Assembly (NCBI GenBank): GCA_963514005.1
Contig: CAUPSL010000102.1
Span: 62,001-121,536, forward strand
Origin: Raja brachyura
Taxonomy: Eukaryota
Direction of reading: 5' to 3'
Length of the DNA: 59,536 nt
The notes under the pieces are model-generated. The model did not search any database. It saw only the letters and a list, made by a program, of their open reading frames with translations, and was not told the origin of the DNA. How positions within the stretch are numbered: the stretch's first letter is position 1; each line of letters starts with the position of its first letter. This document shows, in pieces, positions 22,868 through 59,536 of this stretch. The position numbers and the translations under genes are program-made.

Positions 22868-22894
22868 AACTGCAGCTGTTTCTCTCTTTGGAAG
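22868..22894 (+). CDS. BTN: Butyrophilin-like 27-nt cytoplasmic exon (ELQLFLSLE)
   Basis: Polypyrimidine tract ttttcag|, GAAG|gtaag, phase 1-1. Size is typical of BTN heptad exons. Confidence 0.7.
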
Positions 22895-23139
22895 GTAAGA
22901 TATTTCGGAGACAGCAGAGGAACAGGCCATTCGGCCCAAACTTTCTGATTATGAGAGGCAACGATAGGATAGAGCGTCAACATCTTATTTCCCGCGGTAG
23001 GTATCAAAGGTATGAGGTGATGAGGTGAGAGGACGATGTGTGCAGGGATCTGAGGAGTGATGTTTTAACACAGGGAATGGTTTTGATATCTGAATCATGC
23101 TATCAGAGAACGTGGCGAATCCAGATACTGAATATAATG

Positions 23140-24145
23140 AAGTAGATTTTCAAAGTCTACAGAGAGATTTAGGCCATTTGGAAGAGTGGGCTGAAAGATG
23201 GCAGATGATCAGAGTTTAATGCTGATAAGTGTGAGGTGCTATATATTGGCAGGACAGATCAAAATAGGACGCACATGGTAAATTATAGGGAATTGAGGAA
23301 TGCAGTTGAACAGAGGGATGTAGGAATAACTGTGCATAGTTCCCTGAAGGTGGAATCTCATGTAGATAGGGTGGTAAAGAAAGCTTTTGGTGTGCTGGCC
23401 TTTATAAATCAGAGCATTGAGTACAGAAGTTGGGATGTAATGTTAAAAGTGTACATGGCATTGGTGAGGCCAATTCTGGAATATGGTGTACAATTCTGGT
23501 CGCCAAATTATAGGAAAGATGTCAATAAAATAGAGAGAGTACAGAGAAGATTTACTAGAATGTTGCCTGGGTTTCATACCTAAATTACAGAGAAAGGTTG
23601 AACAAGATAGTTCTTTGGAGCGCAGAAGGTTAAGGGGGGACTTCGTCTTCTTTCGTGTGGCGTGCACAACCTAAAGTTGTTGGGTAACTTGTTCTATTTG
23701 ATCTACGTTTGTCCACGTCGAGTCGATTGCATTAATCGAAACGGGGCTTACCATGTGAAGGTTGCAATCTTCCACCCCAAGGGGGGACTTGATAGAGGTC
23801 TTTAAAATTATGAGAGGGATAGACAGAGTTGACGTGGATAAGCATTTTCCATTGAGAGTAGGGAAGATTCAAACACGAGGACATGATTTGAGAATTAATG
23901 GACAGAAGCTTAGGTGTAACATGAGGGGAACTTCTTTACTCAGAGAGTGGTAGCTGTGTGGAATGAGCTTCCAGTGGAAGTGGTGGAGGCAGTTTCGATT
24001 TTATCATTTAAAAATAAATTGGGTGGGTATATGGACGGGAAAGGAATGGAGGGTTATGGTCTGACTGCAGGTAGATGGGACTAGGTGAGAGTAAGTGTTC
24101 GGCACGGGCTAGAAGGGCCGAGGTGCTGTAATTGTTATATGGTTA
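23140..24145 (+). mobile_element. CR1 LINE 3' fragment
   Basis: LVRPILEYGVQFWSP..., RGDLIEVFKI; GTTATAT tail. Confidence 0.85.
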
Positions 24146-24489
24146 TATACAGTGACTACGCTCAGAACAAAACATAGAACATAGAACAGTACAGGAAAAG
24201 ATCCTTCAGACCACGTATAGACATAGAAAGCTGGAGTAACTCAGTGGGACAGGCAGCATCTCTGGAGAGAATGAACCCATTCCTTTTCTCCAGAGATGCT
24301 ACCTGTCCCGCTGAGTTACTCCAGCTTTTTGTTTCTATCCTAGACTCTTCTGACAGTGGAAACATCCTCTCCACATCCACTCTATCCAAGCCTTTCACTA
24401 TTCTGTAGGCTTCAATGAGGTCCCCCCTCGTTGTTCTAAACTCCAGTGAGTACAGGCCCAGTGCCGTCAAACGCTCATCATATGTTAAG

Positions 24490-25080
24490 TGTTAAAGAAG
24501 GAACTGCAGATGCTGGAGAATCAAGGGTACACAAAAGGTTGGAGAAACTCAGCGGGTGCAGCAGCATCTAAGGAGCGAAGGAGATGGGCGGTGTTTCGGG
24601 TCGAGACTCTTCTTCAGACTGGTTAGGGATCAGGGAAACGAGAGATATAGACGGTGATGTGGAGAGATAAAGAACAATGAATGAAAGATATGCAAAAAAG
24701 TATCGATGATAAAGGAAACAGGCCATTGTAAGCTGTTTGTAGTGTGAAAATGAGAAGCCAGTGCGACTTGGGTGGGGGAGAGATAGAGAGAGATCACAGA
24801 GGGGGAGCAGTTAGAGAGGAGGTTGTGAAACTGTCTCCGTAGGGAGGAGGAGAACTTCTTCAAAGTAGGCATACCTTGAGGAGATATCGTAGTGGAGTAG
24901 ACAAAGTGTTGAAGAAAGAACTGCAGATGCTGGAGAATCGAGGGTACACAAAAGGCTGGAGAAACTGAGAGGGTGCAGCAGCATCTAAGGAGCGAAGGAG
25001 ATGGGTGAAGTTTCGTGTCGAGACCCTTCTTCAGCAGTTCTCTCTCTATCTCTCCCCCACCCAAGTCGCACTAGCTTCTC
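24490..25080 (-). mobile_element. Penelope-like pLTR fragments (partially duplicated)
   Basis: Reverse complement of the pLTR seen at 5500-5757 and 44670-44920. Confidence 0.75.
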
Positions 25081-27415
25081 ATTGGAAAATAATCACCAAT
25101 GCGTCTACTATTTCTAGAGCCATCTCCCTGAGCACCCTGGGATGCAGACCATCAGGCCCTGGGGTTTTATGGTCCTTCACTCCCATTAGCCTCGCCAATA
25201 CTATTTCTCACCTAATGAAAATTTATTTCAGTTCCTCTACCCGCTTAGATCCTCTGTCCACCAGTACATCTGGGAGATTGTTTGTGTCTTCCTTAGTGAA
25301 GGGTTACCCATTCAACCCTTCTGCCATTTCCTTGTTGCCCATAATCATTTCACCCGTGTCTGCCTTTAAGGGACCCACATTTGACTTTGCTACTCTTTTT
25401 CTCTTAACATATCTAAAGAAGCTTTTACTGTCCTTCTTTATATTCCTGGCCAGCTTCCCTTCGTACTTCATCTTTTCAGTCCGTATTGCCCGTTTTGTTT
25501 CTTTCTGTTGTCCTATGAAAGTTTCCCAATCCTCTGGCTTTTGGCTACTCACTACTGTGTTATACATCTTTTCTTTTAGTTTTATTCTATCTCTAACTTC
25601 TCTTGTCAGCCACGGTTGCCTCCTACTCCCCTTAGAATCTTTCTTCCTTTTTGGAATGAAATGATCCTGCATCTTCCGGATTAAGCCCAGAAATTCCTTC
25701 CATTGCTGTTCCACTGTCATTCCTGCTAGGATCCCTTTCCAGACTACCTTGGCCAGCTCCCCTCTCATGCCTTCATAGTCCGCTTTGTTCAACTGCATCA
25801 CTGACACTTCGGATTTAACCTTCTCATTCTCAATTTGCAGATTAAAACTAATTATATTATGATCACTACCTCCAAGCGGTTCCTTTACCTCGGGTTCTCT
25901 CATCATATCTGGTTCATTGGACAACACTAAATCCAGAATTGCCTTTTCTCTGGTCGGCTCCATTACAAACTGCTCGAAGAATCCATCTCGGAGGCATTCT
26001 ACAAACTCTCTTTCTTGGGTGTCCTGAACCAACCTGATTTGCCCAGTCTACCTGCATATTGAAATCCCCCATCACCGCAGTGGCATTACCTTTGTTACAT
26101 GCCAGTATTAACTCCTGCTGCAACTTACACCCTGCACCCGGGCTTCTATTTGCGCGTCTGTATATAACACCAATTAGTGTCTTCTTGCCTTTACAATTCC
26201 TCAACTCAATCCACAGTGACTCTACCTCGTCAGTCCCTATGTCTTCCCTTGCAAGGGACTGAATTCCATCCCTCACCAGCAGAGCTACCCCCCCCTCCTC
26301 CTCTGCCCACCTGCCTGTCCTTTCTATAGGATGTATAACCCTGAATATTAAGTTCCCAGGCCTGATCCTCCTGCAGCCACGTCTCAGTAATCCCCACAAT
26401 GTCATATCTACCAATCTCTAACTGAGCCTCAAGCTCATCTACTTTACTTCTTATACTTTGCGCATTCATATACAATACTTTTAATTCCTTACGCATCTCA
26501 CCTTTCACATCGATCCCTATTATACTTGGCCATACTCTCCTATCCCTTTGTGAGCCTTTCCCGTTAATTCCCGTGGGGTCATTAGCTTTCGCTTTAACTC
26601 CATCCTCGACTATCCCATTTGACACCCCATCCCCCTTATTCAGTTTAAAACCACCCGTGTGGCAGTGGCAAACCTGCCTGGCAGAATGCTGGTCCCCCTC
26701 CTGTTAAGATGCAATCCGTCCCTTTTGTACAGTTTCCCCTTACTCCAAAACAGATCCCAGTAATCTAAGAATCCAAATCCCTGCCCCCTGCACCAGTTCC
26801 TCAGCCAAAGATTCAGGTCCCGTATCTCCCTGTTCCTGCTCTCGCTAGCACAACGAACTGGAAGTAAACCGGAGATAACAACCCTGGAGGTCCTGCTTTT
26901 CAACATTTTTCCGAGCTCTCTAAAGTCACGCTGCAGAATATTCATCCCCTTCTTTCCAACATCGTTTGTGCAGACATGCACTACCACTTCCAGCTGTTCA
27001 CCTTCGCCCTTGAGGATTTTCTGCACTCTGTCCGTGACATCCTGGATCCTGGCACCAGGAAGGCAGCACACCATCCTCGAATCCCGTGTGTTCCTGCAGA
27101 AACCACTGTCCGCACCTCTCACAATGGAGTCTCCAACTACAATGGCGTTGCCTGACTTTGGCCTCTTTGGTTTTGGCTCAACAGCACGTTTTGCTTCGTA
27201 AGCCAATCTGTCGCTCAGTGTGATAATGTCTTCTGTCCCGGCAGCTTCTAAGTGGGTGAACCTGTTCACAAGAGGTGCAACACCCGAGAACCTTTGCATT
27301 CCATGTTTCCCTCGTTTTCTCACCGTCACCCACCTTCTCTCTTCCAGTACCTTAGGTGTAACAATCTTACTGTAGGACTTGTCGAGGAATGACTCAGTTT
27401 CTCGGATGAACCTGA
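25081..27415 (-). mobile_element. CR1 LINE 5' part: ORF1 (SGNH/GDSL esterase-like) + APE endonuclease + linker
   Basis: ORF1 motifs VVGDSIVRG, CCLPGA, VHVCTND, DGLHLN. ORF2 motifs YMNAQSIRSK, VGITETWL, VMGDFN, LGGSDHN. Confidence 0.9.
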
Positions 27416-27416
27416 G

Positions 27417-28033
27417 GATTTGAGTATAGGAGCCGGGAGGTTCTGCTTCAGTTGTATAGGGTCTTGGTGAGACCACACCTGGAGTATTGCGTACAGTTCT
27501 GGTCCCCAAATCTGAGAAAGGACATTATTGCCATAGAGGGAGTGCAGAGAAGGTTCACCAGATTGATTCCTGGGATGTCAGGACTGTCTTATGAAGAAAG
27601 ACTGGATAGACTCAGTATATACTCTCTAGAATTTAGGAGATTGAGAGGGGATCTTATAGAAACTTACAAAATTCTTAAGGGGTTGGACAGGAAGCAGGAA
27701 GATTGTTCCCGATGTTGGGGAGGTCCAGGACAATGGGTCACAGCTTAAGGATAAGGGGGAAATCCTTTAGGACCGAGATGAGAAGGACTTTTTTCACACA
27801 CAGAGTGGTGGGTCTCTGGAACTCTCTGCCACAGAGGGTAGTTGAGGCCAGTTCATTGGCTATATTTAAGAGGGAGTTAGATGTGGCCCTTGTGGCTAAG
27901 GGGATCAGAGGGTATGGAGAGAAGGCAGGTACGGGATACTGAGTTGGATGATCAGTCATGATCATATTGAATGGCGGTGCAGGCTCGAAGGGCCGAATGG
28001 CCTACTCCTGCATCTAATTTCTATGTTTCTATG
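27417..28033 (+). mobile_element. CR1 LINE 3' fragment
   Basis: [18 protein letters not shown]...GIRGYGEKAG; TTTCTATG tail. Confidence 0.9.
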
Positions 28034-28079
28034 TCATCCACTTGCTTCTCCAGTTCCCCAACACGGTCCTTCAGGAGCT

Positions 28080-29040
28080 GTACCTGGATGCACTTCTCAC
28101 ATTTGTAGCAGCCAGAGGCAGAAAGCATTTGGTTTCTTTACTACCGATTTTACTTCCAGATTAACATTTGGGGAATCCTGCACCAGCACTCCCAAGTCAC
28201 GTTGCATCTCCGATTTCTGGATTCCCTCCCCATGTAGAAAATAGTCTGCATCTTTATTCCTACTACCAAAATGCATGACTCCACACTTTGCTACACTATA
28301 TTGCATCTGCCACTTCTCTGCCCACTCTCCCCACCTGTCCAAGTCCTTCTGCAGAGTCACTACTTTCTCTACACTACCTGCCCCTCCACCTATTTTCATA
28401 TCATCCACAAACTTGGCCACTAAGCCTTCTAACCCGTCGTCCAAATCAGTAATACACAACGTGAAGAGTAGCGGCCCCAGCACCGACCCCCACAGAACTC
28501 CGCTAGTCAGTGGCTGCCATCCAGAAATAGCCCCCTTTATTGCCACTCTTTGCCTTCTGCCATCCAGCCAACCTGCTATCCATGCTGGTATCTGCCCTTT
28601 GATACCATGGACTCTCATCTTCCTGAGCAGCCTCACGTGTGGCACCTTATCAAAGGCTTTATGAAAATCTAGATAAACACCATCCAGTAAATCTCCTTTG
28701 TCTGTCGTGCTGTTAACTTCTGCAAAGTATTCCTGCAGATTCGTCAGGCAAGATCTCCCCTTCACAAAACAGCTGACTTTGACCTATTTTATCATGAACC
28801 AAGTTCTCCGTAAGCTCAGCCTTTATAATGGATTCTGATATCTTGCCAACCACCAAAGTCAAACTAACCGGCCTCTAGTTCCCAATATTCTGCTTTGCTC
28901 CCTTCTTGTGCAGCGGGGTAATATTGGCAAATTTCCAATCATCTGGAACCACTCCTAACTCTAGTGATGCTTGAAATATCACAGATGCTATCTATGTATT
29001 AATGCGTCCACAAACTCAAATACTTCTAATGCGTTCAACT
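28080..29040 (-). mobile_element. CR1 RT fragment (duplicated, longer, at ~32560-35100)
   Basis: ORF 28097-28765 carries RT motifs; near-identical sequence at 32800-33640. Confidence 0.85.
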
Positions 29041-29286
29041 CTCTAATCCTCTCAACTCTATGCCAATTTGCTCTCAGCTCAAGTAGCAATCCAGAGATTA
29101 TTACCTTCTTGGTTCTGCTGTACAATTTGGTATCTAGCTGTTAAAATTCAGGATTGAACCCAGGTCCCTGGTGCTGTGAAGAGCTGCGTCGCTGTGCCCC
29201 CCTCTTTGTTCCTTGCTCCCCGCTGTCATTATTTTATTTCCAATTTTAGTTGCAGTGAAAATGTGAAATATTTCTGTTTTGTGCAG

Positions 29287-29313
29287 GATACGAGGAAATG
29301 GAACGATATTATG
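29287..29313 (+). CDS. BTN: Butyrophilin-like 27-nt exon preceding B30.2 (GYEEMERYY)
   Basis: tttgtgcag|...TATG|gtaag, phase 1-1. Paralogous copy at 35347-35373. Confidence 0.72.
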
Positions 29314-30759
29314 GTAAGTACAGGCCGATGTACAATTCAGTAAAACTATCTGGTGTGTGTTACGTTGGCTAAAGCGCAGATCATGAATAGTTCAATATAC
29401 CGTAGAACAGTACATCACAAGAACAGGCCATTTGGCCCACAATATCTGTGCATAACATGTTGCGAAGACCAGCTCTTATCTGCCTGCACATAATCCATAT
29501 CCCTCCATTCCCTGTATATCCAGGTGTCTATCTAAAATGCCACTATCGTATCTGCCTCCACCACCACCCCTGGCAGCACATTCCAGGTGCTCCCAACACT
29601 GGGAAAAACACTTGCCCCGCACAAATCCTTTAACCTTTGCTCCTCTCACCTTAAAGCTATGTCCTCAAGTCTTTGATTATTTTCACCCTGGGAAAAAGGC
29701 TCTGACTGTCCACCTGTTCTATGCCTGTCATAATTGTATCCACTTCTGCCTCAACCACCTCTTCCAACAGCTTGTTCCATAATCCCATCACCCTTTGTGT
29801 AAAAGAGTTCCCTCTCTGGTTCCTGTTAACTCTACTCCTCCCCCCCCCCCCCCACTTTAATCCTATGGTTGTTGATGCCCCAACTCTGCGTTTACCCGAT
29901 CTATCCCTCTCACGATATTGTTCACCTCTTTCTGATCAACTCTCTTCCTCCTGCGCTACGAGGAATAAAGTCCTAGCCTGCTCACCCTCTCCCTATTGCT
30001 CAGGCCCTCTAGTCCTGGCAACATCCTCGTGAATCTTATCTATACCCTTTACAGCTTGACAACGTATTTCCTATAACATGGTGCCCAGAAGTGAACACAA
30101 CACTCCAAGTGTGGCTTCACCAACATCTTATATAACCGCAACGTGACCTCCCAACCTCTATATTCAATACTGTGACTGATGAAGGCCAATGTGCTGAAAC
30201 ACTTTATGAGCACACTATCTACCTGTGACACCACTTTCAAGGAACTATGTTACTGCACTCCTACATTAAATTTATATTTAATCCTGTATTAAATACCATC
30301 AACCATTCCTCAGCTCATCTGCCCAACCGATCAAGATCCTGCTGTAATTTTTGACATCCATCTTCACTATCCACAATACCACCCGCTTTTGTGTCATCTG
30401 CAAACTTGCTAATTATGCCATGTACATTCTCACCCAGATCATTGATATAAGCACAGAACCATGAGGCACACCACTAGTCACAGGCCTCCAGTCCGGAAAA
30501 CAACCTTCCCTCATCACCCTCTGCTTCCCTCCATAAAGCCAATGTTCTATCCAATTAGCTATCGCTTCTTGGATCCAATGCGCTCCAACCTTCCTCTGGT
30601 TCTACGTTTCTCACCACACCTTCAATTCTTGTCAGAATCCATCATTCTCATCCCTTTGTCTTCAGCTCATCACCTCCGGCCTCGGTTCCTGTCTCCACCC
30701 TTCTCTCCCCACCTGGTCATTCTACCAATCACCCCGCCTTACCTGAACCACGTGTGTTG

Positions 30760-30950
30760 CTCCACCCCCCCCCCCACCTGAACCCACCTGAGTTACTCCA
30801 CCTCCCCGCCTCACCTGAACCCACCTGTCTTGCTCCACCCTCCCACCTTCACCTGAACCCACCTGTCTTGCTCCACCCCCTCACCTGAACCCATTTGTCT
30901 TGCTCCACCCCCTCACCTGAACCCACTTGTATTGCTCAAACCCCTCACCT
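30760..30950. repeat. Short degenerate tandem repeat (~30-35 bp; CCTCACCTGAACCCACCTGTCTTGCTCCACC), ~5-6 units
   Basis: Units directly visible. Confidence 0.75.
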
Positions 30951-31318
30951 CTGCACAGATGCCGCTCAATTTATGCACGCACTGACAGAGCATTATCAGT
31001 TTTGCCCGGTAAATATGTGTACGTGTGTATGTATGTACACAGACAGGAAAACAGAGAGGCACTCTCATGCACACACACACACACTCACAGACAAACAGAG
31101 TAAAGTATTTTGCTGCACCCCTTCCCGTCTCTTTCTGCGGTAAGAGCCGAGGGAAGCATGCGAATGAGGAAGCGTGACAAAAACTCCGTGACAGATTGTG
31201 TTGTCCACCCGATGTGGTTGGGGTGAAACCCCGGGCAAGGGTTCAGTTGTCCGCCCGCCTGTGCCCGAGTCTCCCCCCGACCCCCGGGGACTCTGTGATT
31301 CTCTGCTTCTCCCCCCAG

Positions 31319-31851
31319 TCTCCGTCACCCTGGATGTGGAAACAGCGCATGCGCGGCTCCAGGTGTCTGAGGATCGGAAGAGGGTGAGAGTGACCCTGAC
31401 CGAGAGGAGTCTCCCTGACACCGGGAAGAGGTTTACAGTCAGTCGGTGTGTGTTGGGATCGGAGGGATTCACATCGGGGAGACATTACTGGGAGGTGGAG
31501 GTGGCGGGGAGTCGGGGCTGGAGACTGGGAGTCGCCGCAGAGTCTGTGGAGAGGAAGAGACAGTTCGCACTGACCCCGGAGACTGGAGTCTGGAGCATCA
31601 AGCGGTGGGATGACGAGTTTGATGCAGTCACCTCCCCTCGATCCCCTCTCCCCGCCCGTCCCATCCCCGGGAGGGTGGGAGTTTATCTCAGTTACGAGTC
31701 CGGGACAGTTTCATTTTACGACGCGGACACCAAGTCCCATCTCCACACCTTCACTGGGAACACATTCACGGAGAAACTTTATCCTCTCTTCTGGCCTTGG
31801 CTTACGTACGACTGGATGACAATCTGCTCCGGTTCTGTTCCGGGTGAGTAA
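31319..31851 (+). CDS. BTN: B30.2 (PRY/SPRY) terminal exon of the butyrophilin-like gene, intact
   Basis: ccccag|TC TCC GTC ACC CTG GAT, phase 1. VTLDVETAH, FTSGRHYWEVEV, RVGVYLSYESGTVSFY, LHTFT, EKLYPLFWP; stop at 31849-31851. Confidence 0.92.
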
Positions 31852-31999
31852 AAGATAAGCAAACTTCCGGTCTTTGGGATGTGGGTCGGGGGTGGGGGGG
31901 TGGGGGGGGGGGGGGGGACACAGCACCCACATGAAACCCACAGACTCACAGGGAGTATGTGCACCCCACAAGTCTCCAAGGTCAGGTCTTAAGGTCGCA

Positions 32000-34900
32000 C
32001 GGTCATAGGTGATAGAAGCAGAATTAGGCCATTCGGCCCAACAAATCTACATCGCCATTCAATCATGGCTGACCTATCTCTCCCCATTTTCCTGCCTTCT
32101 CCTCATCACCCCTGATACCAGTACTAATCAAGAATCTATCTATCTCTGCCTTAGAAATATCAATTGATTTCACATCCACCACCGTCTGTGACAAGTAATT
32201 CCACAGATTCACCACCCTCTAACTAAAGAAATTCCTCCTCATCTCCTTCATAAAGGAATATCCTTTAATTCTGAGGCTATGACCTCTAGTCCTCGACTCT
32301 CCCACTAGTGGAAACATCCTCTCCACATCCACTCTATCCAAGGCTATTTGCTATTTATTAGCATTCATCTAAACTCCAGCGAGTACAAGCCCAGTGCTGA
32401 CAAACGCTCATCGTACGTTAAACCACTCATTCCTGGGATCATTCTTGTAAATTCATCTGGACCATCCCAGAGCCAGCTCATCCTTCCCCGGATACAGGGC
32501 GCAACATTGCTCACAATACTCCAAAAACGGCCAGACCAGTACCTTTCAGATCCTCAGCATTACATCCCTAATTTTGTGTTCTAGCCCTCTTGAAATAAAT
32601 GTTAGCATTGAGTTTGCTTGCTTTACTACCGATTTGACTTATAACCATATAACAATTACAGCACGGAAACAGGCCTTCTCGGCCCTTCCAGTCCGTGCCG
32701 ACCATTTATTTTCCCCTAGTCCCATCTACCTGCACTCAGACCATACCCCTCCATTCCCTTCTCGTCCATATACCTATCCACTTTACTTTTAACTTGCAGA
32801 GTAACTTTGAGGGAATCCTGCACCAGCATTCCCAAATCGCTTTGCACCTCTGATTTCTGGATTCTCTCCCCATTTAGAAAATAGTCTATGTCTTTATTGC
32901 AGCCACCAAAATGCACGACTCCACACTTTGCTTCACTACATTACATCTGCCACTTCTCTGCCCACTCTCCCAACCTGTCCAAGTCCTTCTGTAGAATCCC
33001 TGCTTTCTCTACACTTCCTGCCCCTCCACCTATTTTCGTGTCATCTGCAAACTTGGCCACAAAGCCTTCTATTCCCTCATCCAAATCAGTAATACACGAC
33101 GTGAAGAGTAGCGGCCCCAGCACCGACCCCCGCAGAACTCCGCTAGTCACTGGCAGCCAACCAGAATAACCCCCTTTATTGCCACTCTTTGCCTTCTGCC
33201 ATCCAGCCAACCTGCTATCAATGCTGGTATCTGCCCTTTGATACCATGGGCTCTCATCTTCCTGAGCAGCCTCAAGTGTGGCACCTTATCAAAGGCTTTT
33301 TGAAAATCTAGATAAACACCATCCAGTAAATCTCCTTTGACTGTCGTGCTGTTTACTTCGGCAAAGTATTTCTGCAGATTCGTCAGGCAAGACCTCCCCT
33401 TCACAAAACCATGCTGACTTTGACCTATTTTATCATGAACCAAGTTCTCCGTAAACTCAGCTTTTATAATGGACTCTAAGATCTGACCAACCATCGAAGC
33501 CAGACTAACCGGCCTATAGTTCCCAATATTCTGCTTTGCTCCCTTCTTGTGCAGCGGGGTAATATTGGCAAATTTCCAATCATCTGGAACCACTCCTTAC
33601 TCTAGTGATTCTTGAAATATCACAGATGCTATGTATCTATCTATGTATTAATGCCTCCACAATCTCTAAAGCCACCTCGTGCAGAACCCTGGGGTACAGT
33701 CTATCCAGTCCAGGTGACTTATCCACCTTCAGCCCTTTCAGCTTCCCAGCACCTTCTCCTTAGTAACAGCCACTCCACTAACTTCCACCCCCTGACTCTC
33801 TTGCATTTCAGGCACGTTGCTGGTGGCTTCCACTGTGAAGACTGTTGCAAAAAAAATCATCAACTCCTCACCCATTTCTTTATTCTCCATTATCACATCT
33901 CCTGCATCGTTTTCCAGCTGTCCAACATACACTCTTACATCTTTCTCACTGTTTGTATAACTGAAGAAACTCTTGCTATCCTTTTTTATATTTCCAGCTA
34001 GCTAACCTTCATATTTCATCTTTCCTCATCGTATATTCCCTTTTTAGTTACCTTCTGTTGTTCTTCAAAAGCTTCCCAATCCTCTGGCTTCCCACTAATC
34101 TTTGCAATGTTATACGCCTTCTCTTTTAGTTTTATACAGTCCCTGACTTCCCTTGTCAGCCACGGGCACCTCATTCTCCACCTACAATCTTTCTTCTTCT
34201 TTGGAATGAAAAGGTCCTGCATCTTCCAAATTATTCCCAGAAATTCCTGCCATTGCTGGTCCATTTTCATTCCTGCTAGGGTCCCTTTCCAGTCAACTTT
34301 GGCCAGCTCCTCCCTCATGCCTCCATAGTCCCCTTTGCTCAACTGCAATACAGACACATCTGATTTCACCTTCTCCCTCTCAAATAGCAGGTTGAATCTT
34401 ATCATATTGTGGTCGCTACCTCCTAGTAGTTCCTTTATCTCGAGTTCCCTTGTCAAATCCGGTTCATTATACAACACTAAATCCAGAGTTTCATTTTTTG
34501 CTGGTGGGCTCCACCACAAGCTGCTCTAAGAATCCATCTCGGAGACATTCCAGAAATTCCCTTTCTTGGGGTCCAGAACCAACCTTGTTGCATATTGAAA
34601 TCTCCCATCACCACCGTAGTAATGCCTTTCTTACATGCCAATTGTATATTCTGATGTAACTTGTACCCTATATCCTGGTTACTGTTTGGGGACCAGTTGA
34701 TAACTCCCATTAGAGTATTTTTACCCGCACAATTTCTCAGCTCTATCCACAATGACTCCACATCTACTGATCCCATGCCACCCCTCGCAAGGGACTGAAT
34801 TTAATTCCTTACCAACAGAGCTGCCTCACCCGCTCTGCCCACCTGTCTGTCTTTCCGATAGGACGTATAACCCTGAATATTCAGCTCCCCGCTCTGAACC

Positions 34901-35100
34901 TCTTGAAACCACATCTCTGTAATTCCCACAACATCATGCCCACCAACCTGTAACTGTGCTACAAGCTCATCCACTTTATTTCTTATACTGCACACATTCA
35001 AATACAACACCTTTAATTCTGTATTCACCTCCCCTCCTCTCACACCAGTTCTGATTTTACCTGACCTTACTCTCTTATCCCTTCTTTAACTTTCCGTCCT
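32000..35100 (-). mobile_element. CR1 fragments including long endonuclease + RT piece
   Basis: ORFs 34801-35043, 34477-34776, 34016-34519, 33147-33593 and 32941-33210 show EN/RT motifs. Confidence 0.85.
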
Positions 35101-35346
35101 GTTACGGAAAGTTAACTCTATGCCAATTTGCTCTCGGCTCAAGTAGCAATCCAGAGATTATTACCTTCTTGGCTCTGCTGTACAATTTGGTATCTACTGT
35201 TCAAATTCAGGATTGAACCCAGGTCCCTGGAGCTGTGAAGAGCTGCGTCACTGTGCCCCCCTCTCTTTGTTCCTTGCTCCCGCTGTCATTATTTTATTTC
35301 CAATTTTAGTTGCAGTGAAAATGTGAAATATTTCTGTTTTGTGCAG

Positions 35347-35373
35347 GGCACGAGGATGTGGAATGATATTATG
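35347..35373 (+). pseudogene. BTN: Duplicate 27-nt BTN exon with CGA>TGA stop
   Basis: GG CAC GAG GAT GTG GAA TGA TAT TAT G versus GA TAC GAG GAA ATG GAA CGA TAT TAT G; flanks homologous to 29055-29400. Confidence 0.75.
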
Positions 35374-37099
35374 GTAAGTACAGGCTGATGTACAATTCAA
35401 TAAAACCATCTGGTGTGTGTTATGTCGGCTATAGCGCAGATCATGAATTAGTTCAATATAACGTAGAACAGGACAGCACAAGAACAGGCCATTCGGCCCA
35501 CAATGTCTGTGCAGAACATGGTGCGAAGACCAGCTCTTATCTGCCTGCACATAATCCATATCCCTCCATTCCTTGTATATCCAGGTGTCTATCTAAAATG
35601 CCACTATCGTATCTGCCTCCACCACCACCCCTGGCAGCACATCCCAGGTGCTCCCCACACTGTGAAAAATAACTTGCCCCGCATAAATCCTTTAACATTT
35701 GCCTCTCTCACCTTAAAGCTATGTCCTCGAGCCTTTGATTATTTTCACCCTGGGAAAAAGATTCTGACTGTCCACGCGTTCTATGCCTGTCATAACTGTA
35801 TCCACTTCTGCCTCAACCACCTCTTCCGACAGCTCGTTCCATAATCCCATCACCCTTTTTGTAAAAGAGTTCCCTCGCAGGTTCCTGTTAACTCTACTCC
35901 CCCCCCCCCCCTTTATTTAAATCTATGATTGTTAATTCCCCTACTCTGGGGACGAGACTCCGATGTGCGTTTACCCGATCTATTCCTCTCACGATACTGT
36001 ACACCTCTATAGGATCACCCCTCATCCTCCTGCGCTATGAGGAATAAAGTACTAGCCTGCTCATCCTCTCTCTATAGCTCAGGCCCTCGAGTCCTGGCAA
36101 CATCCTCATGGATCTTATCTGTACCCTTTACAGCTTGACAACATATTTCCTATAACATGGTGCCCAGAACTGAACACAACTCTCCAAATGTGGCTTCACC
36201 AACGTCTTATATATCCGTAACGTGACCTCCCAACTTCTATACTCAATACTGTGACTGATGAAGGCCAATGTGCTGAAAGACTATATGAGCACACTATCTA
36301 CCTGTGACGCCACCTTCAAGGAACTATGTTACTGCACTCCTACATTAAGTTTGTATTTAATCCTGTATTAAATACCATCAACCATTCCTCAGCCCATCTG
36401 CCCAACCGATCAAGATCCTGCTGCAATTTTTGACAACCATCTTCACTATCCACAATACCACACACACTGAGCCAGCATTACCAGATTTGCCCGGTAAATA
36501 TATGTACGTGTGTGTGTATGTACACACAGACAGGCACACACTAACACATACACTAAAACACACACTAACACGCACACAGTGACACACACACAGACAGGCA
36601 CACTCACACTCACTCACACTCATACACCCTCACACTCTCTCACACTCTCTCACACTAACACACATTCACACTCTAACACACACTCACATGCACACACACA
36701 CACACTCATAGATAAACAATGAAGTATTTTGCTGCACCCCTTCCCCTGTCTCTTTCTACGGAGGGAGCAGAGGGAAGCATGAGAATGAAGAAGTGTCCAG
36801 ACCCTAGACGTGTTCTGTCATTTCCTCACACACGTGTTGCCTGACCCGCGGACTTCCTCCAGCTGTTTGTTTTTATTTCTCACCGTTAACTCGGTTCTCC
36901 TCCACTTCCACCACAGTTAGGAAACTCCGGGGAACATGTCCATGGGATGTTGGTGGGCTGGAAAACAGCCGGGATATCGTCCAGTTGTCCGCCCGCCTGT
37001 GCCCGAGGCCTAGCGGCCTCTCCCCCGGTCCCGGGGCCTCGCTGCCCGAGTCTCCCCCCGACCCCCGGGAACTCTCTGATTCTCTGCTTCTCCCCCCAG

Positions 37100-37360
37100 T
37101 CTCCGTCACCCTGGATGTGGAAACAGCGGGTCCGCGGCTCGAGGTGTCTGAGGATCGGAAGAGGGTGAGACTGACCGGGACCTGGAGGAGTCTCCCTGAC
37201 ACCAGGAAGAGGTTTACACACTGGCCGTGTGTGCTGGGATTGGAGGGATTCACATCGGGGAGACATTATTGGGAGGTGGAGGTGGCGGAGATTCGATTGT
37301 GGAGTCTGGGAGTCGCCGCAGAGTCTGTGAAGAGGATGATACAGGTCAAACTGACCCCAG
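37100..37360 (+). pseudogene. BTN: Second B30.2 exon, truncated after roughly half the domain by a CR1 insertion/deletion
   Basis: VSVTLDVETAGPRLEVSEDRK...FTSGRHYWEVEV...KLTPE, then a 19-bp local duplication and minus-strand CR1. Confidence 0.85.
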
Positions 37361-37379
37361 AGGATGATACAGGTCAAAC

Positions 37380-38060
37380 CTGTCCTGTCCATCTACCTGT
37401 CGAACTGTTTCTTAAACGATGGGATAGTGCCAGCCTCAACTACCTCCTCTGGCAGCTTGTTCCATACACCCACCACCCTCTGTGCGGAAAGTTACCCCTC
37501 GGATTCCTGTTAAATCTTTTCCCCTTCACCATGAACTTATGTCCTCTGGTTCTCGATTCCCCTACTCTGGGCAAGAGACTCTGTGTATCTACCAGATCTA
37601 TTCCTCTCGTGATTTTGTACCTCTCTATAAGATCACACCTCATCCTCCCACACTCCATAGAATAGAGACCCAGCCTACTCAACCTCTCCCTATATCTCAC
37701 ACACTCTAGCCCTGGCAACATCCTCATAAATCTTTTCTGAACCCTTTCAAGCTTGACAGTATCTTTCCTATAACATGGTGCCCGGAACTGAACACAATAT
37801 TCTAAATGCGGTCTCATCAACGTCTTATACAACTGCATCATGACCTCCCAACTTCTATACTCAATACTCTGATTGATGAAGGCCAAAGTGCCAAAAGCCT
37901 TGTTGACCACCTTATCTACCTGCGACTCGACCTTCAAGGAACCATGCACCTGTACTCCTATACCCCTCTGCTCTACAACACTACCCAGAGTCCCACCATT
38001 TACTGTCAAGGTCCTGGCCTTGTTCCACGTCCCAAAATGCAACACCTGACACTTCTCTGT
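37380..38060 (-). mobile_element. CR1 3' fragment
   Basis: ORF 37440-38084: KCQVLHFG...LYKTLMRPHLEYC. Confidence 0.85.
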
Positions 38061-53327: not shown

Positions 53328-53630
53328 TCACTTGGTGTCGGTGCTGGGCCCGGGCCCGGGCCGTCTCCTGGCCGACCACAGCTGCCCGTGGATGGTGAGC
53401 GCGTCCACGTTGGGCGAGAGGATCTTGGAGGGGATAAGGTGGAACTGCTTGTGGTCCGAGTTGTACTTGTACAGCCCCTCGATCATCTGCAGGTGGATCA
53501 GCTTGGGCCCGGTCCCCCACAGCCTGTGGATGTCGCCCGTGTCGGCGCTCAGTGAATACAGAGCGCGGAACTGGCAGCGATGGTCACGGAACAGAATCAC
53601 GCACTGGGCGTGTGCGCAGCGGACCAGCTC
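53328..53630 (-). CDS. CAMSAP: CAMSAP-family gene, last coding exon (CKK domain C-terminal part)
   Basis: ccccgcag|GAG, 303 nt. ELVRC..VILFRDHRCQFRALY...GTGPK...MIEGLYKYNSDHKQF.LIPSK.LS..VDALTIH..LW matches the CKK consensus. Confidence 0.93.
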   Translation of the reverse strand, partial: ELVRCAHAQCVILFRDHRCQFRALYSLSADTGDIHRLWGTGPKLIHLQMIEGLYKYNSDHKQFHLIPSKILSPNVDALTIHGQLWSARRRPGPGPSTDTK

Positions 53631-53682
53631 CTGCGGGGAGGAGGGGAGAGGCGAGCGGTCACTGGGAGAGAGAGCTGGTCAA

Positions 53683-55540
53683 GCGCCCAGTAACCCGGAC
53701 CCCAGCCCGGCCCAGCGCCCAGTAACCCCAACCCCAACCCGGCCCAGCGCCCAGCAACCCCAACCCCAACCCAGCCCAGTGCCCAGTAACCCCAACCCGG
53801 CCCAGCGCCCAGTAACCCCAACCCCAACCCGGCCCAGCGCCCAGTAACCCCAACCCAGCCCAGCGCCCAGTAACCCCAACCCGGCCTAGCGCCCAGTAAC
53901 CCCAACCCGGCCCAGCACCCAGTAACCCCAACCCCAACCCCAACCCAGCGCCCAGTAACCCCAACCCCAACCCGGCCCAGTAACCCGAACCCCAACCCCA
54001 ACCCGGCCCAGCGCCCAGTAACCCGAACCCCAACCCCAACCCCAACGCCCAGCGCCCAGTAACCCCAACCCGAACCCCAACCCGGCCCAGCGCCCAGCAA
54101 CCCCAACCCCAACCCGGCCCAGCCCAGCGCCCAGTAACCCCAACCCGGCCCAGCGCCCAGTAACCCCAACCCGGCCCAGCGCCCAGTAACCCCAACCCCA
54201 ACCCGGCCCAGCGCCCAGTAACCCCAACCCGGCCCAGCGCCCAGTAACCCCAACCCGGCCCAGCCCAGCGCCCAGTAACCCCAACCCCAACCCTAACCCG
54301 GCCCAGCGCCCAGTAACCCCAACCCCAACCACAACCCGGCCCAGAGCCCAGTAACCCCAACCCCAACCCGGCCCAGCGCCCATTAACCCCAACCCCAACC
54401 CGGCCCAGCACCCAGTAACCTGAACCCCAACCCCAACCCCAACCCGGCCCAGCGCCCAGTAACCCCAACCCGAACCCCAACCCGGCCCAGCGCCCAGTAA
54501 CCCCAACCCAGCGCCCAGTAACCCGAACCCCAACCCCAACCCAGCGCCCAGTAACCCCAACCCCAACCCAGCGCCCAGTAACCCGAACCCCAACCCCAAC
54601 CCGGCCCAGCGCCCAGTAACCCCAACCCCAACTCCAACCCGGCTCAGCGCCCAGTAACCCCAACCCCAACCCGGCCCAGCGCCCAGTAACCCGAACCCCA
54701 ACCCCAACCCCAGCGCCCAGTAACCCCAACCCGGCCCAGCGCCCAGCAACCCCAACCCCAACCCGGCCCAGCCCAGCGCCCAGTAACCCCAACCCGGCCC
54801 AGCGCCCAGTAACCCCAACCCGGCCCAGCGCCCAGTAACCCCAACCCCAACCCGGCCCAGCCCAGCGCCCAGTAACCCCAACCCGGCCCAGCGCCCAGTA
54901 ACCCCAACCCGGCCCAGCGCCCAGTAACCCCAACCCCAACCCGGCCCAGCGCCCAGTAACCCCAACCCCAACCCGGCCCAGCGCCCAGTAACCCCAACCC
55001 GGCCCAGCGCCCAGTAACCCCAACCCGGCCCAGCCCAGCGCCCAGTAACCCCAACCCCAACCCTAACCCGGCCCAGCGCCCAGTAACCCCAACCCCAACC
55101 CCAACCCGGCCCAGAGCCCAGAGCCCAGTAACCCCAACCCCAACCCCAACCCGGCCCAGCGCCCATTAACCCCAACCCCAACCCGGCCCAGCGCCCAGTA
55201 ACCTGAACCCCAACCCCAACCCCAACCCGGCCCAGCGCCCAGTAACCCCAACCCGAACCCCAACCCCAACCCGGCCCAGCGCCCAGTAACCCCAACCCCA
55301 ACCCCAACCCAGCGCCCAGTAACCCGAACCCCAACCCCAACCCAGCGCCCAGTAACCCCAACCCCAACCCCAACCCAGCGCCCAGTAACCCGAACCCCAA
55401 CCCCAACCCGGCCCAGCGCCCAGTAACCCCAACCCCAACTCCAACCCGGCCCAGCGCCCAGTAACCCCAACCCCAACCCGGCCCAGCGCCCATTAACCCC
55501 AACCCCAACCCGGCCCAGCGCCCAGTAACCCGGACCCCAA
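53683..55540. repeat. ~1.85-kb G/C-skewed compound minisatellite [CCGGCCCAGCGCCCAGTAA(CCCCAA)1-3]n in the last CAMSAP intron
   Basis: Directly visible modular repeat. Confidence 0.95.
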
Positions 55541-56163
55541 CCCCCTCAACCCTTCCGTTCACTTCGCACCTCCCCTCCCACTCTCCCTCCCTTCCTCACT
55601 CCCTAAATCCTCCACCCTCTCTCCCTGTCCCCCCAATCCCCCCCCTCCAATCCCCCTCGCCTCCCCTTCACTCCCTCTCCTTCTCTAATCCAGCTCCCCA
55701 ATACCCCTCCCCTCCCTTCTCCAATCCTTCCCCCTCCCTATACTCCCCCGCCCTTCCCTCCTGTGGGGAGGGGGGCGGAGAGGTGACTGGTCACTGTGGA
55801 GAGACCCGGCCCTGCGCCGTTTAACCCCCCCCCCCCCCCCCCCTCCTCCATCTCCCGCACCCCACGCGAATAAATGGGCGGGGCGGGGAGAGGGGAAGGG
55901 GGGGGGTGCGAAGATGGGAAGGAAAAGAGAGGGAGGGGGGAGATGGAAGGGAGGGGAAGGGGTGGGGAGGGGGAGATGGTGAGAGGGGAGGGAGATAGAT
56001 CAGGGTGGGGAGAGGGGAGAGGGTTGGGAGAGGGCCGGGAGAGGGGGAGAAGGGCTAGCCCGGGGAGGGGCAGATGGGAGAGGGCAGGATGGGGAGAGGG
56101 GAGAGTAGGCAGTGGGTCGGACAGGGAAGAGAGAGAGAGGGGGGCGGGAGAGGGGGGGCTCAC

Positions 56164-56282
56164 CTCGATGACCCGGTCCCGCTGGGTCTCGTTCACCTTC
56201 CCCGCCAGACAGCAGTAGGTGAGCGCGTTGTGCAGGATCAGCCGGTTGGACTTGGTGCTCGGCTCCTTAAACAGCTTTAGGC
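56164..56282 (-). CDS. CAMSAP: CAMSAP-family exon (CKK N-terminal part)
   Basis: 119 nt, phase 1-0, cccag|...GAG|gtgag. GLKLFKEPSTKSNRLILHNALTYCCLAGKVNETQRDRVIE. Confidence 0.93.
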
Positions 56283-56449
56283 CTGGGGGGGGGACACACA
56301 AGGGGTCAAACAGCAGCGGAAATCCACCCCCTCCAACCTCTCCTCCCCTCCTTAACCCCTGCCCCTATCACCCTCCCCTCCTCACCTGCCCCCCTCCCCA
56401 CCTCCCCTCCCCAACTCCCCCCTCCTTCCCACCTCCCCCTCCCCGGTAC

Positions 56450-56535
56450 CTGACGACTCTGTGGGCGGCGGCGCCGTGATCCGTTCGCAGTCTCTCCGCG
56501 GCCGCTGCTTCGCTCCCGGCTCCGCCTGCTCGCGT
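56450..56535 (-). CDS. CAMSAP: CAMSAP-family exon upstream of CKK
   Basis: 86 nt, phase 2-1, tctag|...CAG|gtacc. Ends RDCERITAPPPTESSG, resembling the DWE...TEYTG segment before CKK. Confidence 0.72.
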
Positions 56536-56583
56536 CTAGACGGTGGGGAGACGGCGGACGGTCAGGACTGGAGCGCGGGGGGA

Positions 56584-57110
56584 GGGGGGAGCGGAACAGG
56601 ACGAGGGGGGAGCGGAACAGGACGAGGGGGGAGCGGAACAGGACGAGGGGCTCGCCCCCCTCTCTCGTCCCCTCGTCCTCACCTCGTCCCCACCTCCCCC
56701 CCCTCGTCCCCACCTCCCCCCCCTCGTCCCCCCCTCGTCCCCACCTCCCCCCCCCCTCGTCCCCACCTCGTCCCCACCTCCCCCCCCCTCGTCCCCACCT
56801 CCCCCCCCCCCTCGTCCCCACCTCGTCCCCCCCTCGTCCCCCCCTCGTCCCCACCTCCCCCCCCCTCGTCCCCACCTCCCCCCCTCGTCCCCACCTCCCC
56901 CCCCTCGTCCCCACCTCCCCCCCCTCGTCCCCCACCTCCCCCCCCCTCGTCCCCACCCCCCCCCCTCGTCCCCACCCCCCCCCCCCCTCGTCCCCACCCC
57001 CCCGTCCCCACCCCCCCACCCCCCCCCCCCTCGTCCCCACCCCCCCGTCCCCACCCCCCCGTCCCACCACCCCCCCCCCCTCGTCCCCACCTCCCCCCCC
57101 TCGTCCCCCA
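56584..57110. repeat. 21-bp repeat x3 followed by (CCCCCCTCGTCCCCAC)n C-rich minisatellite
   Basis: Directly visible. Confidence 0.9.
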
Positions 57111-57428
57111 CCACTGTGACTATAAATACACTCCCTTCCTCGCCAACCCCGCTCCGCACATTCTCACCCCCCCCCCCGCCGTGACCAAATCCCAGACCCC
57201 CCCCTCCACCACTGCGTATCCCTCCCCCGCCCTCGCGTATCTCTACATCCCCCCCCATCTCCAAACTAACCCAGCCCCCCAAACTGCCCCCCCACCACCA
57301 CCATCACCACTGCATGTCCCTCCCCCGCCCTCGCGAATTCCCATCCACCCTCCAAACTGCCCCCCCCCCCCCGGTGGGCCTAACCCCGGGGACCCCCCAC
57401 TCCGGCGGAGGGTCCGCGCCACACTCAC

Positions 57429-57526
57429 CGACCCTCTCCCCGCCTCTGCCGCGGCGCCGCCTCCTGCGGGCCGGTGTGGGGCCCGGGGCCCGGGAGCCGC
57501 AGCGTCGGCCGCCTCGGCGAGATCTC
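57429..57526 (-). CDS. CAMSAP: CAMSAP-family exon (predicted)
   Basis: 98 nt, phase 0-2, ctctccag|...CG|gtgagt. Phases fit both neighbouring exons; open frame EISPRRPTLRLPG... Confidence 0.62.
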
Positions 57527-57619
57527 CTGGAGAGGGGAGAGGATGGTGAAACCCCCCTCGTCGGCTCCCCCCAAACAATCCCACGACCCTCCCCTCCCCC
57601 CCCCCTCCCATCACGTTGT

Positions 57620-58630
57620 ACCAGCTTCCGCATCTGCACCCAGGATGAGGTGTTCCACACCAGGGCATCGGAGATGTCCTCATTCTTCAAGGAAAGGGGG
57701 TTCCCCTCTTCTACCATTGACCAGGCTCTCACCAGGGTATCTCGTCCTACATCTCCGCTCCGTTCGCAACAACCAGCCTGGTGTCCCGGTGGCTCAGCTC
57801 TTCAAATCGCCCTCCCATTCCGAAGCCGACCTCTCTGTCCTGGGCCTCTTCCATGGCCAGAGTGTGGCCCACCGCAGATTGGAGGAGCAGCACCTCATAT
57901 TTCGTTAGGGTATTCCGATGCGGCCGAGGTTGCGGCTCCTGGGCCGCGGGCCCCATATCCCCTGACTCCGTTATCTTTAAGAGCCCTATCCAGCCCTCTC
58001 TTGAATGTATCCAGAGAACCGGCCTCCACCGCCCTCTGAGGCAGAGAATTCCACAGACTGATTCCTGTGATGTCAGGACTTTCATATGAGGAAAGACTGG
58101 ATAGACTCGGCTTGTACTCGCTGGAATTTAGAAGATTGAGGGGGGATCTTATAGAAACTTACAAAATTCTTAAGGGGTTGGACAAGCTAGATGCTGGAAG
58201 ATTGTTCCCGATGTTGGGGGAGTCCAGAACAAGGGGTCACAGTCTAAGGATAAGGGGGAATTCCTTTAGGACCGAGATGAGGAAAACATTCTTTACATAG
58301 AGAGTGGTGAGTCTCTGGAATTCTCTGCCACAGAAGGTAGTTGAGGCCAGTTCATTGGCTATATTTAAGAGGGCGTTAGATGTGGCACTTGTGGCTAAAG
58401 GGATCAGGGGGTATGGAGAGAAGGCAGGTACGGGATACTGAGTTGGATGGTTACACAAAAAGCTGGAGAAACTCAGCGGGTTGCAGCAGCATCTAAGGAG
58501 CGAAGGAGATAGCGACGTTTCGGGTCGAGACCCTTCTCCATGGATGATCCGCCATGATCACATTGAATGGCGGTGCAGGCTCGAAGGGCCGAATGGCCTA
58601 CTCCTGCACCTATTTTTCTATGTTTCTATG
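57620..58630 (+). mobile_element. Intronic Penelope fragment (57620-57905) and CR1 3' fragments (57955-58630)
   Basis: RICTQDEVFHTR, VAQLFKSPSHS; [18 protein letters not shown]; CR1 tail. Confidence 0.85.
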
Positions 58631-58690
58631 GACAGCATGGGCAAGGTGGGTCGAATGGCCTGTTGAAATGCGGTGTGAGTATGAACATAC

Positions 58691-59536
58691 CCGAACCCTC
58701 CCCCCGTCGCAAACGCCCCCCTCCCATCCACCTCCCTCATCCTCACCTCTTGTCTCCTTGGTCTCTCCGCCTCCCTGCCGCTCCTTCCGTCCTCCGGTGC
58801 TGGGATCCTGCTGGGTTCTCCGGCGGCCGGGCCCCGCTGTCTCGTCGTGTGGGGCGGTCTCCGGCCCCCGCCGCCTCTCTGCCTCGCCCATGGGACCCGT
58901 ACCCAGGCCCGGGGCTTCCAGCAGGTCGAGCCGAGCTCCGCGGGGTGTCAATGTCCACAGCTCCTCGCCCTCCCCACCCCCCTCGCTGACCCCCACCCCC
59001 TCCATCTCCCCGTCCCTCTGCCCCTCCCTCTCTCCTTCCCCTTCCCCCTCCATCTCCCCCTCCCCCTCCCTCTCTCCTTCCCCGTCCCTCTCCCCTTCCC
59101 CCTCCATCTCCCCCTCTCTCTCCCCCAGCGACCCCTCGCCAGGGCCCAGTCCGGCGGTTCCCCGCAGGTCGAGCCGGGCTCCGCAAGGCCCCGGGCCGCA
59201 GGCCTGCTCCTCGCCCTCGCGGCCGGCCAGGCGCAGCAGCCGGGTGTAGGCCCGTCGGCCGAGGCTCTGCCAGCGGCGGCCCAGCCAGGCCTCGCGGGCC
59301 TGCAGCCGGGCCCGGATCTCCGTCTGCTTCAGCTGCAGCCGCTGGCGGACCTGGGCCCACTCGGGGTCCGGCCCGAAGCCCACCTGGCCCCGCCGCCCGC
59401 GGCCGCGCCTCCGCTCCTGAAGCTGCCGCTGCTCAGCGAAGCTGGTCAGCCTGGCGGAGCCCGGGCCGGGGTCGGGGTCTAGCGGGACCCAGCCCTCGTT
59501 CTGCCCTTCACCGGCCCCCAACTCTTGCACCCCCTC
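58691..59536 (-). CDS. CAMSAP: CAMSAP-family large central exon (partial; continues beyond the window), containing a CC1-like segment
   Basis: Open frame; RLTSFAEQR and EWAQVRQRLQLKQTEIRARLQAREAWLGRRWQSLGRRAY resemble CAMSAP (M)TSFAE and the CC1 helix. Donor CGG|gtatg, phase 0. Confidence 0.78.

Follow-up and report, generated by a model that had tools for sequence, protein, structure and literature searches.

A fast-evolving CAMSAP lineage of elasmobranchs, represented in the skate Raja brachyura, as a candidate fourth ohnologue of the MHC paralogon

CAMSAPs, of which vertebrates are credited with three, are the main stabilisers of microtubule minus ends in animals. Here, we examined a stretch of 59,536 nt from the skate Raja brachyura (contig CAUPSL010000102.1, assembly GCA_963514005.1; hereafter the window) and show that its positions 53328-59536 hold the 3' half of a transcribed gene of the CAMSAP family, encoded on the minus strand. 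Five exons, E1 to E5, make up this half (Table 1), the rest of the gene, towards its 5' end, falling beyond the window. The gene belongs to a lineage, which we call X, that is so far known only from elasmobranchs and stands apart from CAMSAP1, CAMSAP2 and CAMSAP3, and it is a candidate for a fourth ohnologue linked to the major histocompatibility complex (MHC). Our literature search returned no paper linking CAMSAP with sharks, ohnologues, the MHC or a fourth member, and one mention of synteny on paralogons; matches to "CAMSAP4" appear, judged by their titles, to be noise. Nor did it return a description of X itself.

The CKK domain is encoded by E4 and E5, which were searched singly and entered in the trees as separate rows. 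Both match Pfam CAMSAP_CKK (PF08683), at 53.3 and 93.7 bits over profile positions 2-39 and 41-119, respectively, in agreement with the clear CKK domain given in a first-pass annotation of the window. E5 further matches the solved CKK structures of CAMSAP1 (PDB 6QUS and 5M54) and CAMSAP3 (1UGJ and 5LZN) with E values of 1e-28 to 1e-25 and keeps 25 of 26 near-invariant CKK columns. Across the lineage, the X domain keeps 43-44 of the 48 columns (~90%) whose conservation reaches 95% or more among canonical CAMSAPs and those of the outgroup; the Asn-Ala pair of HNA, a conserved motif at the domain start, is among those kept. Clade-wide changes in X are GPKL to GLKL, and K43R.

Splicing of the gene is documented by contigs from public sequencing runs, which we compared with positions 55600-59299 of the window. 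A contig of 1172 nt from run X1 and one of 1397 nt from run X2 both skip 56283-56449 and 56536-57428, each gap being bounded by GT..AG on the minus strand, and the phase of E3 is compatible with those of E2 and E4. The same contigs, which cover 58751-58933 and 59130-59299 of E1, leave this exon at 58747 (a GTGAGG donor) and enter E2 at 57526, the joint running from 57528 to 58751 with one letter between. In four runs (X1, X2, X6 and X11) the matching pieces end at 56163 and the contigs continue for 214-818 nt; the donor of E4 is therefore confirmed, because the intron was available for matching yet stayed unmatched in all four. The E4-E5 joint itself falls outside the compared stretch, and we place it from the stops at 56163 together with the continuous Pfam profile. 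Although the runs are small (39-178 million letters), contig depth is 7-71, as would be expected of RNA rather than of low-coverage DNA; the records give the run type only as a guess. From the 818 nt by which contig 1 of run X1 extends beyond E4, the 3' untranslated region probably reaches to about 52813; no poly(A) signal was found within 830 nt 3' of the stop codon. Of the five phase-compatible exons proposed in the first-pass annotation, two spliced junctions are thus exact and the E4 donor is confirmed, whereas its first donor (58691) is used by no spliced contig, the contigs using 58747 instead.

At this first donor, the window and the transcripts part by one base. The transcripts read GACAGAG and the window reads GACAAGAG, with one A more at 58750-58751. 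Together, E2, E3 and E4 measure 303 nt (98 + 86 + 119) and E5 starts in phase 0, so that E2 must start in phase 0 as well. The long open reading frame (ORF) 58610-59530 reaches 58747 in phase 1 with the window letters, and in phase 0 with the single A of the transcripts. Since the single A restores phase 0, the expressed message is open from E1 through CKK, as had been claimed from the letters of the window, while those letters themselves put the E1 frame out of phase: the window copy as assembled is frameshifted by one base, and the extra A reflects an indel introduced in assembly or else a defect of this copy. The window copy might be a decaying pseudogene; in that case, the butyrophilin-CAMSAP unit would have been amplified locally and the transcripts would come from another of the copies. 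The discrepancy with the contigs of two runs, which breaks the frame at the donor actually used, would fit such decay, and so would the neighbouring butyrophilin with its inverted V exon and truncated second B30.2. We nonetheless consider a pseudogene unlikely, as mismatches between the run X1 contig and the window number 2 in 219 aligned exon bases, the one-base gap aside, the remaining exons are all open with canonical splice sites, and CKK keeps all but one of its 26 invariant positions. The discrepancy, moreover, lies in a stretch of 75% G+C, and a single-base indel in such a G+C-rich stretch is a common assembly error.

The part of the protein that precedes CKK is less conserved. Pfam detects no CC1 (PF17095) in the window, but the first 110 residues of the E1 translation are 62% identical to X of Narcine bancroftii (P0001) and 42% to X of Cetorhinus maximus (P0003); in the latter, the homologous segment reaches 26.8 bits with Pfam CAMSAP_CC1, just short of the cut-off of 27. 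The first-pass annotation had called CC1 barely recognisable. Beyond the CC1-like part, E1 carries a Gly/Glu-rich repeat with no alignment to the orthologues. CC2 was not detected in X proteins, and no CC3 exon stands between E1 and CKK in the skate contigs, which join E1 to E4 directly through the linker exons; the introns were found to hold the 32-bp minisatellite and pieces of transposable elements (TE), as stated in the first-pass annotation. E2 carries "TGPQEAAPRQRRGEGRRE", nearly identical to "TGQQETTPRQRRGEGRRE" of Mobula X, and its basic stretch PRQRRGEGRRE ("TPRQRRGEGRRE" in Mobula X) stands where shark X has a CC3-like helix. We read this stretch as a possible remnant of that helix, which in sharks is ~45 residues long and homologous to the start of CC3 ("RRRSQFLQRQRQRAEQIKLRRQQ" vs "KRAAFLLKQQRKAEEARLRRQQ" in CAMSAP1). 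Shark X proteins comprise a CAMSAP-type CH domain (66.4 bits in Pristiophorus, 26.1 bits in Cetorhinus), long acidic tandem repeats, a weak CC1, a shortened CC3 and then CKK. Batoid X gene models show only a short basic stretch at the CC3 position and no CH domain, and may be without upstream exons. The loss of CC3 thus appears specific to batoids and not to the whole lineage, so that the proposed absence of CC3 holds for batoids and does not extend to sharks. The acidic arrays between the CH region and CC1 are built from a unit that differs by species: "REDPTEVVQGG" or "REDPTEVV" in Narcine, "GQGAQEDPDWLxTS" in Cetorhinus and "GEQEDPDGGVGSGx" in Pristiophorus (P0004). The Narcine array also yields a spurious Pfam match to phage Gp5_trimer_C.

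From about 15 billion proteins clustered at 50%, we searched the cluster representatives (1.84 billion proteins) and examined the best 150 of them. Three matches lay below E 1e-30, followed by a gap before the ordinary CAMSAPs. The top group contained Narcine bancroftii (77% identity), Hemitrygon akajei, Hypanus sabinus, Cetorhinus maximus, Pristiophorus japonicus and a fragment from Rhincodon, and a word search added Carcharodon carcharias (P0165) and Mobula birostris. When 547 CKK proteins were scored against X and canonical profiles, exactly 9 were X-type, all from elasmobranchs. In the databases, X proteins are named "uncharacterized" or "CAMSAP3-like".

Canonical CAMSAPs coexist with X, often in the same species. 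Full-length CAMSAP3 (about 1440 aa, with all four Pfam domains) occurs in Cetorhinus and Hemitrygon, which both have X, and in seven more elasmobranchs; CAMSAP1 occurs in Carcharodon, Pristiophorus and Narcine, all with X, and in four other elasmobranchs; and CAMSAP2 was found in the catshark Scyliorhinus. In each species with both, the X and canonical genes lie on contigs that differ in length. Because the same species or taxa also have canonical CAMSAP1, 2 or 3, X represents a fourth lineage. The names given to the Hypanus and Pristiophorus proteins, along with a few CAMSAP3-like CKK residues, could suggest that X is instead a fast-evolving elasmobranch orthologue of CAMSAP3. We reject this as very improbable, given that true CAMSAP3 accompanies X in Cetorhinus and Hemitrygon and that approximately unbiased (AU) tests reject a shared origin with elasmobranch CAMSAP3 (see below). 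One protein of Scyliorhinus canicula named "CAMSAP2 isoform X1" (P0360) falls firmly among the elasmobranch CAMSAP3 proteins; it was probably misnamed at the source, the true catshark CAMSAP2 being P0029 or P0545.

Phylogenetic analysis places X outside all three canonical clades. With CKK only (146 columns, LG+G4), the X clade was recovered with 100/100 support, the window standing beside Narcine, and lay outside CAMSAP1 (94/93), CAMSAP2 (100/94) and CAMSAP3 (99/98). With CH and CKK combined (426 columns, X being represented by three shark proteins), X again fell outside CAMSAP1 (100/99), CAMSAP2 (100/99) and CAMSAP3 (100/100), with CAMSAP2 and CAMSAP3 as sisters (99/98). Nesting of the X CKK in CAMSAP1, 2 or 3 was thus not seen, and each of these clades is supported and includes elasmobranch members. 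Under LG+G4, AU tests on the combined set rejected the union of X with elasmobranch CAMSAP1, CAMSAP3 and CAMSAP2 (p = 0.0015, 0.0007 and 0.0016, respectively), although not with CAMSAP1 as a whole (p = 0.09). Under LG+C20+F+G4, X joined to all CAMSAP1 costs 0.93 log-likelihood (lnL) units (p = 0.44), and X joined to elasmobranch CAMSAP3 costs 25.9 (p = 0.003) and is rejected. Overall, X is a separate lineage outside CAMSAP1, 2 and 3; a position as sister to CAMSAP1 is fully compatible with the data, with a fit that matches that of the best tree; the data exclude a recent origin from CAMSAP3; and an origin from CAMSAP1 on the elasmobranch stem is disfavoured, weakly so under the better model.

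The genomic position of X points to the MHC. CAMSAP1, CAMSAP2 and CAMSAP3 map to 9q34, 1q32 and 19p13, and the extended class II genes of humans include PFDN6, B3GALT4, WDR46, DAXX, KIFC1, TAPBP and VPS52. The Carcharodon X protein (P0165), whose contig agrees in length (115,848,844), is the product of LOC121291862, which is the last entry (115,472,571-115,613,256) in the published gene table of white shark chromosome 19 (NC_054485.1), the MHC chromosome (Verissimo et al. 2023, PMC10751288, Supplementary File 1). Entries preceding it include pfdn6, b3galt4, wdr46, a SLAMF gene, rnf5, kifc1, daxx, vps52, TAPBP and clic1, and its annotation column is empty, so that the relation to CAMSAP went unrecognised there (PMC10751288). 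MHC markers such as pfdn6, b3galt4, wdr46, daxx, kifc1 and TAPBP thus accompany the gene in the white shark; for the skate, the known neighbour is a butyrophilin-like gene. The kifc1-pfdn6-b3galt4-wdr46-daxx block of the reedfish contains no CAMSAP. The MHC-6 and para-9/12/14 chromosomes have been treated as sisters (PMC10751288), and CAMSAP3 lies beside NOTCH3 (PMC3502363). From the sisterhood of these chromosomes and the CAMSAP map positions, the predicted topology is ((CAMSAP1,X),(CAMSAP2,CAMSAP3)), which is allowed by our data.

Because canonical paralogues coexist with X, X falls outside the three clades and the white shark gene sits in the MHC, we think the odds favour an ohnologue origin of X, as the copy that remained on the MHC (human 6p21-type) paralogon after the two rounds of genome duplication in early vertebrates (2R). 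X would then probably be the 2R sister of CAMSAP1, and would have been lost in bony vertebrates; none was found in chimaeras. The fourth, MHC-linked CAMSAP ohnolog proposed in the first-pass annotation is to this extent supported, if unproven: where we looked, we saw neither nesting in a canonical clade nor a lack of MHC linkage nor CC3 exons in skate transcripts.

Several of our results weigh against this reading. Among the 547 CKK proteins, those of chimaeras, bony vertebrates and cyclostomes included no X type, and because X is seen in elasmobranchs only, ohnology needs at least one loss, probably two. The CKK-only tree does not resolve the placement of X, and none of the three lineage-specific origins is rejected with CKK alone (p 0.05-0.13), the union of X with elasmobranch CAMSAP1, 3 and 2 costing 10-16 lnL (p = 0.059, 0.125 and 0.052, respectively). 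X sits on a very long stem (0.66-1.1 substitutions per site), and in the CH and CKK tree with tunicates, where this stem measures 0.9-1.1, X goes to the base beside them; we flagged this as long branches meeting and treated the basal position as an attraction artefact. Without tunicates, its placement receives 57/44 support only, with AU values of 0.15 for X with CAMSAP1, 0.051 with CAMSAP3 and 0.042 with CAMSAP2. Under the mixture model (LG+C20+F+G4), X with elasmobranch CAMSAP1 costs 12.7 lnL and is not rejected (p = 0.083). Signature columns were uninformative, X being too divergent. The MHC linkage comes from one species, the white shark, and one published table, and the only MHC-side context in the skate is a butyrophilin-like neighbour of a kind widespread in this genome, where the gene copy itself is frameshifted as assembled.

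The same data bear on the closest competitor, in which a small-scale duplication of CAMSAP1 (or, with less likelihood, of CAMSAP2 or CAMSAP3) on the chondrichthyan or elasmobranch stem gave rise to X, which came to lie on the MHC chromosome and diverged so fast that trees eject it from its parent clade. Such an origin would suit the restriction to elasmobranchs and the AU values for elasmobranch CAMSAP1 under the mixture model and with CKK alone, and CAMSAP1 is the canonical paralogue most similar to X by identity and score. The X CKK also evolves far faster than its paralogues, so that long-branch artefacts are to be expected. We regard this duplication as possible but, on balance, less than likely. 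It is 11.7 lnL worse than X as sister to all gnathostome CAMSAP1 and is rejected under LG+G4 (p = 0.0015), X shows no excess of residues specific to elasmobranch CAMSAP1 (2 vs 3), and a random insertion would have had to hit the sole CAMSAP-less paralogon, inside the conserved pfdn6-b3galt4-wdr46 block.

The rate of X differs sharply from that of the canonical genes. Between Narcine and Cetorhinus, the X CKK is 68% identical, compared with 99% for CAMSAP1 (Narcine vs Carcharodon) and 94% for CAMSAP3 (Hemitrygon vs Cetorhinus). Among the listed differences between window and contigs, which are small in number, 3 of 3 in E3 and E4 are synonymous, while 15 of 18 in E1 and E2 are non-synonymous, including all four listed for run X2 in E2; two listed differences between runs in E3 are both synonymous. 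Constraint appears to act on CKK while the linkers drift. The locus has 63-70% G+C, and G+C at third codon positions (GC3) in E5 is 0.91. The white shark orthologue is the last gene of its chromosome. Chromosome end, high G+C and GC3, and minisatellites hint at a subtelomeric, highly recombining setting, in which biased gene conversion might explain the high rate of X.

CKK domains have been compared to explain their preference for minus ends (10.1101/586230). Judging from the conserved columns, recognition of microtubule minus ends is most likely retained by the X CKK, which would wedge between protofilaments as those of CAMSAP1 and CAMSAP3 do. What batoids keep between the CC1-like segment and CKK would be short, fast-drifting linkers rich in Pro, Arg and Gly. 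Given that CC2 is undetected and the CC3 exon absent, and with the domain roles generally reported for CAMSAPs, we infer that batoid X may track or cap minus ends and would not decorate or stabilise the lattice in the manner of CAMSAP2 and CAMSAP3. A further scenario, in which a CAMSAP ohnologue survives only in the elasmobranch MHC, stripped-down and fast, is co-amplified with butyrophilins in skates and is shaped like its immune neighbours by diversifying or recombination-driven forces, with a possible immune-cell or germline-specific role, strikes us as quite improbable.

Comparison with known systems helps to define what is peculiar to X. Like CAMSAP1 (human 9q34.3), its closest canonical paralogue (50-58% identity to E5 of the window; 102 bits to PDB 6QUS), X has a C-terminal CKK with the identical two-exon split, and shark X shares with it an N-terminal CAMSAP-type CH and the "RRRSQFLQRQRQRAEQ" start of a CC3-like helix. 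Unlike CAMSAP1, X is shorter (560-1320 aa in gene models vs about 1600), carries species-specific acidic repeats, has no detectable CC2 and a CC3 that is shortened (sharks) or absent (batoids), evolves far faster and lies on a different chromosome. With CAMSAP3/Nezha (human 19p13.2) it shares CKK and, for some proteins, the name "CAMSAP3-like", whereas the true orthologues of that gene coexist with X and a shared origin with their elasmobranch members is rejected. Patronin/PTRN-1 of invertebrates is one protein with CH, coiled-coil and CKK that protects microtubule minus ends; CKK is the functional module common to both, but X is a vertebrate-internal paralogue that groups with tunicates or invertebrates only via long-branch attraction.

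Families with four ohnologues on the MHC paralogon include NOTCH1-4, RXRA/B/G, BRD2/3/4/T and RALGDS/RGL2. X resembles them in that the white shark gene lies in an extended class II-type block and the pairing of CAMSAP2 with CAMSAP3 matches para-1/para-19, and differs in that the MHC-side CAMSAP occurs only in elasmobranchs and is highly derived, its ohnology being drawn from position and tree. If the ohnologue reading is true, X fills the empty MHC slot of the CAMSAP family, which would then join the four-member families from which the proto-MHC and the sequence of the 2R events are reconstructed. It would also offer a natural "minimal" CAMSAP (CKK kept, CC2 and CC3 lost, acidic repeats gained) with which the modules needed for minus-end tracking could be told from those needed for stabilisation, and an example of extreme rate acceleration in a very conserved cytoskeletal domain, possibly owing to a setting at a chromosome end rich in G+C and minisatellites.

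Table 1 Features of the CAMSAP-family gene and the butyrophilin-like neighbour in the window (RT, reverse transcriptase; TRF, Tandem Repeats Finder; a slash within letters or between positions marks an exon border).
Feature	Position	Strand	Description and evidence
E5, last coding exon	53328..53630	-	C-terminal two thirds of CKK and stop codon; Pfam and PDB matches
Intron 4	53631..56163	-	Mostly 32-bp G+C-rich minisatellite; acceptor CAG/GAGCTG at 53631/53630
E4	56164..56282	-	N-terminal third of CKK (GLKLFKEPSTKSNRLILHNALTYCCLAGKVNE...); Pfam; spliced contigs of runs X1, X2, X6 and X11; AG and GT sites
E3	56450..56535	-	86-nt basic, proline-rich linker directly before CKK; joints 56282/56450 and 56535/57429 in runs X1 and X2
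E2	57429..57526	-	98-nt Pro/Arg-rich linker; spliced contigs of runs X1 and X2; acceptor CCAG/GAGATC at 57527/57526
Intron 1	57527..58746	-	LINE/TE fragments ~57600-58700; RT-tail ORF 58067-58441
E1, large exon	58747..59536	-	ORF 58610-59530; donor GAG/GTGAGG at 58747/58746; extends past window end
CC1-like conserved segment of E1	59210..59455	-	RLTSFAEQRQL ... RRWQSLGRRAYTRLLRLAGREGE; identity to Narcine and Cetorhinus X
Gly/Glu-rich tandem repeat within E1	58990..59126	-	TRF periods 12, 18 and 42
One-base discrepancy	58750..58751	-	Window AA vs single A in spliced contigs of runs X1 and X2
Butyrophilin-like gene overall	16129..37665	+	Pfam exon matches
V-set exon	16129-16770	-	Pfam V-set 48.8 bits
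BTN Ig-C exon	17870-18250	+	Pfam C2-set_3 63.4 bits
PRY/SPRY exon	31198-31851	+	PRY 64.1 and SPRY 82.1 bits
Second B30.2 fragment, PRY only	36985-37665		PRY 74 bits

The butyrophilin-like gene lies 21.5 kb from the CAMSAP exons by its B30.2 exon, in agreement with the ~21 kb given previously, and its V-set exon is on the strand opposite to the Ig-C and PRY/SPRY exons. Within the CAMSAP gene, the intron 4 minisatellite (53682-55544) consists of about 58 copies of its 32-bp unit (TRF), and intron 2 holds a second G+C-rich minisatellite (56651-57109) with about 22 copies of a 20-bp unit. The LINE tails of intron 1 (57600-58700) reach a summed contig depth of 1e5-1e6 with many rearranged joints in all four runs, and this TE family is probably very abundant and transcribed. 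Elsewhere in the window, a run of 133 N at 40487-40619 marks an assembly gap or a masked stretch.

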